Positions 40,489 to 42,926 of a stretch of 64,000 nucleotides of DNA are shown here, in pieces. The position numbers and the translations under genes were made by a program. The stretch's first letter is position 1, and the number at the start of each line of letters is the position of its first letter. A model generated the notes under the pieces. It saw nothing but the letters and a program-made list of their open reading frames with translations, did not search any database and was not told the DNA's origin. The stretch covers positions 744,001-808,000 of the forward strand of contig NW_027270965.1 in NCBI RefSeq assembly GCF_040938485.1, in the 5' to 3' direction. Source of the DNA: Diadema antillarum. Lineage: Eukaryota.

Positions 40489-41002
40489 CTGTCATGCACA
40501 GGAGAACATAGAGAGAAAGAAATCTTATACATTCTCCATAGACTTGCCGGGTATACCCGGTATCAGACATTCTAAAAACAAATTTCATTGCTAGTCGAAG
40601 TCCCTTTTATGGTGTTTAGATATCGGACATTTGATTAACGGAACTGGCTCAATTCTGCTTAAATTGGCTGGTTATTGAAGTCAGTCTAATTACTCGACAG
40701 AGATAAGTTGACATATTAACTAATTATAAATCAACAACATAGAGCAGTGGGCACCAAGGTTCATTTACAACAAACAAGGCTACTCTTGAATTCAGATCTT
40801 GTGATAGGTGGAGAGTGCACCACAGATAAGTATTGTGTGAGAATTCACAAATGACTTCTAACTCTACACAGTCATGTACTGCATTTTAAAAATTACTGAG
40901 ACATGTGTCATGCACATATGTGAAGAACATACCCATATGGACGAATTGCCAACTTCATACACATGGAAGAGAGTAGTTTAAAGAAATTGTCCCCAGTCTT
41001 AC

Positions 41003-41064
41003 CTGATGTCGGTCTCTGGTGCATCATATTTCTCCAGAAGCTTGTCGACGTCTGCTTCTAAGCC
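41003..41064 (-). CDS. C6orf118-like exon (GLEADVDKLLEKYDAPETDI)
   Basis: Phase-0 acceptor, gtaag phase-2 donor; 62 nt. Confidence 0.7.
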
Positions 41065-41392
41065 CTGTTCAACAACGCACAAAACAAACATACACAATGA
41101 TAATGATGATGTATGGTACCATGATTACCCCTTAAAATAGCAATGGACTGTTAATTCATGTTCTACACATTCCTGCATAATAGGGTGTTAGTTTGATTGA
41201 CTTGACACAGCTGTTGCACAGATCTTTTTTTTTTCTTTTTCCACTGAGCAGTGCCTAGGGGGATTCATTTTTGTGCTAATAAGCACATATCAGAAGATTA
41301 TAACATCAAGTTTGTTTGAAAGTCTGAATCCTCTCACACATTGCCTGATGCAACTCATGAGAATTCAAAGTGCACGACAACATGATGGTCAT

Positions 41393-41969
41393 TCAAATTT
41401 ATGAAGTTCTTCCGTCGAGATGTTTTCATTGCAACTGATTGACAAATTGCCCTACATCGACGTAAATAAGCACTGAATTGATCAGTGTTTTAGTAGTAGC
41501 CATGATAAAAAATCATGGGCGTACATACTCGAGCAGGATTCGAACCCACGACCTCCTGATCACCGGACAGGCGTCATCTCCACTAGACCACCGAGCTTTC
41601 GCCCGACAGCAAGTGTTGGTTCTAATCCTTATAGCATGCAGCGGGTACTGCTTTGTTATTCAAATTTATGAAGTTCTTCCGTCGAGATGTTTTCATTGCA
41701 ACTGATTGACAAATTGCCCTACAACTTCATAAATTTGAATAACAAAGCAGTACCCGCTGCATGCTATAAGGATTAGAACCAACACTTGCTGTCGGGCGAA
41801 AGCTCGGTGGTCTAGTGGAGATGACGCCTGTCCGGTGATCAGGAGGTCGTAGGTTCGAATCCTGCTCGAGTATGTACGCCCATGATTTTTTATCATGGCT
41901 ACTACTAAAACACTGATCAATTCAGTGCTTATTTACGTCGATGTAGGGCAATTTGTCAATCAGTTGCAA
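41393..41969. mobile_element. TSD-flanked fold-back insertion made of a 267-bp unit with a tRNA-like cassette
   Basis: CATGATGGTCAT at 41381-41392 and 41970-41981; 246-bp inverted arms with one mismatch; direct repeat with period 267. Confidence 0.85.
41801..41872 (+). ncRNA. tRNA-like Pol III cassette (pseudo-tRNA or SINE head); mirror copy on the minus strand in the left arm
   Basis: A box TGGTCTAGTGG at 41808-41818, B box GGTTCGAATCC at 41852-41862; foldable cloverleaf with non-canonical anticodon loop CCGGTGA; T6 terminator at 41886-41891. Confidence 0.7.
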
Positions 41970-42926
41970 CATGATGGTCATCTACAGTCACCACAAAGTT
42001 TTGCAAGTTTGGTGAGCAGAGCCTATGAGTACAACACTGGCACAAATCTCAACTCTGCAGTGTACAAATAGCTGGTGTCCAAAAATAGTGTACATCTCCT
42101 TGCTTTGATATAAGAGCCATCAAACTTCAGTTGAGACACATTCACTTGCTGCTTTGATCACTTTTAACAATGGCAATTTTTTTTTTTTTTTTGCCCCAAA
42201 TCGACTACCTCAGAATTATCCTTATCATTGTCTCCCCTTCCCCTCTTTTTTTTCTTCTTTTTTTTTTTTTTTTTTTGGGGGGGGGGGGGGGGGTACAACA
42301 GTATCAGCAACATAACTTGGCCAGTCAAGCCACAGCTATGTGAACTGGAACATAAAGGATTCATCCTTTATGAAAGCACCTAAAGGTTTCTTACAACCTC
42401 AACTTCTACTCACTGGATGAGGCAGTGAACTTTATATTTTTGCATTATTTTCCAGTAATTTTGAGTCCATACTGAGAGTGTCATTTGAGGAGATTAACTT
42501 ACAAAGTAGGATGACATACGGATAATACTGCTAACTAGCCAAGGAAAGAAACAGATTTTCACACACCATATCACTCACAAGAAAAAAAAAACAAAAACAA
42601 CACACACATGTATGGGTAGCCATGTTGCTTTTAAGTTCAATGATTTACAAAAGGGGTTGCAGTTTTTAGAATGAAGGATTTTTTTTTTTTTTTGAAAGTG
42701 TAGACAAAGAAGTAATTTTCTTTTTCTTTTGTTGTTCTTCTTCATGAATAAGATCATATTTTTGATCTGCATTATCATGAACACGCTGAGAAAAAGAAAA
42801 GAAATAGACTGGGATTTGTAATTCAGGATGCGGTTGGTTATACGGGGCTGAAGGGTTAAAAAGACCTTCTAGTCCACAAATGGAGGAACTGGAGGGCTGT
42901 CTGCCTACTGGTCTACTGATACCCAC

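Follow-up and report, generated by a model that had tools for sequence, protein, structure and literature searches.

How did a short sequence with a tRNA-like gene come to be inserted as two inverted arms, and which enzyme copied it? Positions 41378-41981 of the window, that is, of the 64,000-nucleotide stretch of Diadema antillarum DNA analysed here, raise this question. A first-pass annotation had read the locus as a fold-back retro-insertion, mobilised by a Penelope-like element (PLE) or copied from a circular or tandem template.

By itself, the window locus is an ordinary recent transposon insertion and nothing beyond that. Its copies elsewhere in the genome belong to one repeat family. 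We think it very likely that this family is a young non-coding, non-autonomous element, whose 267-bp unit carries a tRNA-like module and is copied by the reverse transcriptase/GIY-YIG endonuclease of a resident PLE.

Anatomy of the insertion

The insertion is flanked by an exact 15-nt direct repeat, CAACATGATGGTCAT. The left copy lies at 41378-41392 and the right copy at 41967-41981, in line with the target duplication of 12-15 bp annotated before. Between the two copies lies a repeated unit that we number along the strand of the tRNA-like gene, with 41723 as position 1 and 41969 as position 247; positions 248-267 are the reverse complement of 41409-41428. The final AT of the left duplication copy can equally be assigned to unit positions 18-17.

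The insertion consists of two arms. The first (41393-41722, minus strand) contains about 1.25 units in antisense, the number given by the annotation. Phase mapping of locus L001 and a direct repeat at spacing 267 (41388-41467 versus 41655-41734, found by repeat search) agree on this. Its outer, left end is at unit position ~18, and after one full unit its centre end is at position 221. The second arm (41723-41969, plus strand) contains unit positions 1-247 in sense and stops at start site A, ...CAGTTGCAA, where its last CAA is shared with the target duplication. The arms meet head to head at 41722/41723, where position 221 of the antisense arm abuts position 1 of the sense arm. The stretches that can pair, 41429-41675 and 41723-41969, measure 247 nt with 47 nt between them and differ at one position (G/A in the T-stem). 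The single mismatch had been recognised earlier, but an arm length of 246 nt and a loop of 49 nt had been given.

Only the first arm bears a "tail" (41393-41428, minus strand). It is made of unit positions 248-267 plus 1-18 and covers the 36-38 nt between two reverse-transcription start sites, A and B. The window insertion has no poly(A) or simple-repeat tail, as had been observed. The earlier description of the unit as "permuted" has to be dropped: the unit is not permuted; like PLE insertions, this one stops at start sites of reverse transcription inside the unit.

Contigs from DNA data sets have loose ends that accumulate at 41428/41429 and at 41969-41971, and these loose ends are AT-rich. 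In one run (X3), 41 contigs break at window position 41423 (unit position 253), 5 nt inside the tail. This suggests a third, minor reverse-transcription start site or an end specific to a subfamily.

Both arms carry the tRNA-like module. ARAGORN calls it Thr(GGT), and Rfam (RF00005; gathering score 29; scanned stretch 41000-42400) recognises it as a tRNA: it lies at 41800-41874 on the plus strand (42.8 bits) and, in the other arm, at 41524-41598 on the minus strand (39.6 bits). Besides tRNA, the Rfam scan of 41000-42400 yields just weak miRNA-hairpin matches. The B box, GGTTCGAATCC, is perfect, as annotated; the A box, which had also been called perfect, matches at 10 of 11 positions. The tRNA-like module lies centrally in the unit, at positions 78-152, and not at its 5' end.

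A T6 run (41886-41891, plus strand) starts 12 nt past the end of the module, close to the ~13 nt first noted, and sits in the loop of a small hairpin. Its mirror copy is at 41507-41512 on the minus strand. Judged by its letters, the run looks like a Pol III terminator. It is polymorphic in length between units (T6 or T7).

Each start site has a hairpin next to it. The hairpin module at 41935-41969 (plus strand) is directly 5' of site A and recurs in all permuted folds, and a second small hairpin at unit positions 4-17 precedes site B. The two sites finish in similar motifs, TTGCAAT and TTTGAAT, and the duplication follows directly. As for the tRNA-like module, its role is most likely that of an inherited Pol III promoter or of an RNase P/Z processing signal.

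A repeat family with two fixed ends

All genome-wide counts and loci were taken from the 1.75-Gb assembly. The unit is found at very many loci, with 98-99% identity and often in tandem arrays with a period of 267-270; the largest arm comprises at least 38 units (contig C2). The 267-bp family is a young, abundant, non-coding repeat family. Since the unit is present thousands of times in the genome with identical termini, chance can be excluded as an explanation.

The number of copies depends on the part of the unit that is counted. Exact patterns occur 7,156 times for the 20-mer just before site A, 3,132 times for the tail marker and 3,288 times for a marker at the 3' side of the tRNA. Separate pattern counts of A and B ends are approximate, since some GCAATA matches are internal variants and B ends at unit positions 11-17 are missed. 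Comparing 7,156 copies of the 3' module with 3,288 tRNA markers, copies become thinner toward the 5' side, which is expected for 5'-truncated reverse transcripts.

The family is also conspicuous outside the assembly. Contig depth, summed over the unit, is about four orders of magnitude higher than in the flanks in two DNA data sets, and a near-identical tandem contig is present under a third organism code. The unit is further found in "echinoderm metagenome" RNA-Seq contigs (Logan), although the library was size-fractionated and may contain DNA, which makes an RNA origin doubtful. In one genomic region (G000:C21:2352824-2413077), an identical site-A end (GCAACA) appears five times on one strand, at intervals of 10-25 kb. 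The series resembles a segmental tandem duplication in which one insertion was carried along.

Phase mapping covered 19 distinct loci, the first sample being biased to long, two-armed arrays. At these loci, long insertions are two arrays placed head to head, with their 5' ends meeting and their 3' ends pointing outward. The centre junction falls at an arbitrary phase that differs for each insertion, sometimes with a few filler bases. The outer ends, by contrast, are confined to unit positions 247-249 (site A) or 11-22 (site B), 38 nt apart. The family thus comes as tandem arrays or 5'-truncated pieces with variable 5' ends, and not as ordinary head-to-tail SINEs with fixed 5' ends.

The two ends of an insertion are not interchangeable. 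In all eight two-armed insertions read end to end, a small sample biased to long arrays (L001, L005, L009, L010, L011, L023, L024 and L027), one of the arms stops at A and its partner at B, and the tail is present at one end only. The array on contig C2 agrees with this pairing, its right end having been read and its left end taken from coordinates. Loci judged by coordinates also agree (C1, C2:2991317, C5, C6, C78 and C677). Three further two-armed loci, known by coordinates alone, have no full tail marker at either end and are ambiguous.

Two-armed insertions are the minority. By coordinates, about 8 of the 42 loci on contigs C1-C4 are two-armed, and roughly four in five look single-armed. 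At eight other loci the target duplications measure 8-12 bp and are different each time, giving 8-15 bp overall, in flanks that are on average ~69% AT. Single arms have duplications as well: the arm at L021 runs from unit position 130 to 248 and is flanked by its own. A 39-nt, 5'-truncated copy (L061, 7190-7275; G000:C1071), with unit positions 209-247, lies within a LINE-like reverse-transcriptase ORF, in the region of its YRPIT motif, and has a duplication of ~15 bp with one mismatch.

The arms of one insertion are closely related to each other. Units differ at 0.62 positions within an arm and at 0.68 positions between the arms of one insertion, as opposed to 3.85 positions between insertions. 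This points to a single event and a single template variant for both arms of an insertion. We also looked for scars of template jumps, but within-array differences cluster nowhere in the unit except at the T6/T7 run.

These data bear on three rival explanations. The first is an ordinary tRNA-derived SINE moved by a LINE, in which the inverted arm results from twin priming as in the 5' inversions of L1. A SINE would account for the tRNA-like module and its A and B boxes, for the varying length of the target duplications and for the 5' truncation of copies. Even the proportion of two-armed loci on C1-C4, about one in five, is near the known L1 inversion frequency. However, the second arm does not stop at a random internal site but at a fixed one, 38 nt downstream of where the first arm ends, and the arrays reach at least 38 units in one arm. 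In addition, the tRNA part is internal, there is neither a poly(A) nor a microsatellite tail, and there is no LINE-type end; for these reasons the 267-bp element is not a classical SINE. We consider a LINE-driven origin quite improbable.

Alternatively, the insertions could be foldback-type DNA transposons or MITEs, moved by a transposase and bounded by long inverted termini made of tandem repeats. The arms are indeed perfect long inverted repeats of tandem units, their copy number varies from arm to arm, and duplications flank the insertions. Yet the duplications have no fixed length (8 to 15 bp), the termini are offset by 38 nt instead of being inverted copies of each other, and the centre junction is arbitrary. 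About four in five loci are single-armed, and 5'-truncated pieces have duplications of their own (L021 and L061), neither of which fits a foldback element. The gradient of marker counts toward the 3' end is typical of reverse transcription. A transposase is therefore very improbable as the cause.

Finally, the inversion might not be an insertion product at all. It could be an assembly artefact, or a simple tandem insertion could have formed a palindrome by local DNA rearrangement. Inverted and tandem structures of the PLE type are known to trouble assemblies (PMC8557442). For the window, no spanning reads were obtained for 41722/41723, and among short Logan contigs we identified none that bridges this centre junction or the empty site. 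Nevertheless, the same architecture recurs at more than ten independent loci with different centre junctions and different duplications. Both copies of the duplication are intact, and the arms end at the canonical A and B sites, the same termini at which contigs of independent DNA data sets break. An artefact or rearrangement is scarcely credible.

Resident Penelope-like elements and a proposed copying mechanism

A PLE insertion is described as a partial tandem beside an inverted copy that is truncated at its 5' end, and its tail of 30-40 bp often occurs on just one side (Craig et al. 2021, PMC8557442). A PLE protein in purified form is reported to nick and extend the two DNA strands, to favour AT-rich DNA and to begin reverse transcription at two internal sites next to each other (Frangieh et al. 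2024, PMC11167929). The 30-40-bp stretch between these two start sites is the genomic "tail" that is unique to PLEs (PMC11167929).

The 267-bp family has the same properties: its units form partial or multiple tandems, a 5'-truncated copy lies inverted beside them, target duplications vary, targets are AT-rich and reverse transcription starts at two internal sites. Its 38-nt tail is like the one-end tail of 30-40 bp in PLEs. Unlike PLEs, the 267-bp unit has no ORF and is non-coding, lacks a hammerhead core and contains a tRNA-like module. Moreover, it has no detectable sequence similarity to the PLE copies sampled from the same genome.

PLEs are resident in this genome, with at least 146 GIY-YIG (PF01541) matches in open frames of up to 1,031 aa. 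One of these loci serves as a control. At L050 (689-3145; G000:C197:45776-49042), two GIY-YIG-encoding PLE fragments with arms of 1,195 nt are placed head to head in a (TA)n tract. One arm ends ...TTTTCACACT, while the other is extended by a 61-nt tail to ...TTCTCACACTC. Both ends finish in the motif TCACACT, so that the start sites share a short motif, as they do in the 267-bp unit. A canonical minimal hammerhead lies ~90 nt upstream. In other copies of the same PLE family, the ends are (TA)n or (CT)n microsatellites.

A genuine PLE of the same genome thus shows the geometry of the 267-bp family. This identity of geometry is a further point against a SINE moved by a LINE. Together with the two fixed 3' ends 38 nt apart and the head-to-head arms, it supports the Penelope-mobilised origin that the first-pass annotation had proposed.

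We infer that a resident PLE supplied the enzyme, and the insertions could then arise as follows. The PLE enzyme would make staggered nicks in AT-rich DNA, which later become the duplication of 8-15 bp. Reverse transcription would start inside the RNA and not at its 3' end, at unit position ~248 or ~18. In about one event in five, both DNA strands would be extended, one from site A and the other from site B. The two cDNAs, copied from the same RNA variant, would then be joined head to head at an arbitrary point, leaving inverted arms and a one-sided tail. Where the template spans several units, tandem arrays would result.

Arms of several units require a template that is itself multi-unit or circular. 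Because every unit has a T6 run, Pol III is an improbable source of a multi-unit template RNA.

Could the tRNA-like module have taken the place of a hammerhead? In this case host RNase P/Z would cut multi-unit transcripts into unit-length RNAs, which would be circularised, or joined by template jumping, and copied by the PLE. The element would then be a ribozyme-free "retrozyme", in effect a Penelope-dependent SINE. The hint at such a replacement is a short motif, CGAAAGCTCGG(T/C)GG, that equals the 3' half and cleavage site of the resident PLE hammerhead. We regard the replacement as unlikely.

The motif spans the 5' end of the tRNA-like module and corresponds to the half of the hammerhead of the resident PLE family with GAAA, helix III and the cleavage site. 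Window positions 41795-41810 (unit positions 73-88), L050 3016-3030 and L056 756-769 share 13-14 nt of it. From the letters, the match could be due to chance (blast E 0.5), or it could be the remnant of a pseudo-LTR hammerhead that was partly replaced by the tRNA-like module.

A canonical hammerhead core is absent from the unit, in contrast to canonical PLE pseudo-LTRs and animal retrozymes. A motif search for the CUGANGA core found none on either strand of the circularly permuted unit or unit dimer, which bears out the annotation that no hammerhead core is present and that this is not a standard retrozyme. Without a hammerhead core, the 267-bp element is by definition not a retrozyme. Rfam, too, reports no hammerhead in 41000-42400, but the same scan of L050 misses the genuine minimal hammerhead there. 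Hence, the Rfam negative is uninformative and the motif search alone counts. In L050 600-3200, the long, perfect central palindrome draws strong but spurious miRNA-precursor matches from Rfam; they reach 137 bits and yet stay below the gathering score.

A PLE partner with related ends was sought in 30 PLE loci (3.2 kb around every GIY-YIG domain, ~96 kb in total, with the 5' regions of the ORFs mostly outside). In these loci, blastn found only a 14-mer (E 0.5) in common with the unit, and a regular-expression search found no paired TTGCAAT...TTGAAT ends. A 39-nt match (L046/L061) was considered as a partner and rejected, as it is the 5'-truncated family copy inside the LINE reverse-transcriptase gene.

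Comparison with known systems

If a PLE indeed copies the 267-bp unit, then short, tRNA-like repeats that lack a hammerhead can ride the PLE machinery, and annotators would mislabel them as SINEs, MITEs or satellites. Being young and abundant, the family also provides a clean natural record of PLE integration, a process that is unsolved. The two-armed insertions read end to end have one start site per DNA strand and one template variant, which is a testable constraint on this process. The strict A/B asymmetry is the most useful by-product of our analysis, because in vitro the PLE protein has no strand preference between its two start sites (PMC11167929).

Each ingredient of the 267-bp element is known already. 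In the literature searched, we found no element that joins a tRNA-like module to full PLE geometry without a hammerhead, and no description of tRNA-like, hammerhead-less PLE passengers. Three known systems come close.

Animal non-LTR retrozymes are a class in which, by definition, every repeat has a type I hammerhead, and they are regarded as non-autonomous passengers of PLEs (Cervera & de la Pena 2020, PMC7229834; Li et al. 2026 preprint, doi 10.64898/2026.07.22.740005). Like the 267-bp family, they are small (170-400 bp), non-coding and AT-rich, occur as tandem arrays and dispersed monomers, and have target duplications of more than 4 bp. The 267-bp unit differs from them in having no CUGANGA core on either strand.

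Non-autonomous derivatives of Chlamys/Naiad-type PLEs, such as MRC1 of Chlamydomonas (PMC8557442), resemble the 267-bp family in being non-autonomous and free of a hammerhead. Their pseudo-LTRs and multicopy head-to-tail insertions (PMC8557442) are a further likeness. They have 3'-end similarity to an autonomous family, of which the sampled PLE loci gave none for the 267-bp unit, and they lack a tRNA-like module.

The SINE-like elements Sm-alpha and Sj-alpha of Schistosoma (Ferbeyre et al. 1998; see PMC2770079) are the third system. Sm-alpha carries an active hammerhead and the 267-bp unit none, and the hosts belong to different phyla. Like the 267-bp family, these elements have a high copy number with both tandem (satellite) and dispersed copies, and their unit of ~300 bp, like ours, is called a tRNA pseudogene by tRNA finders.
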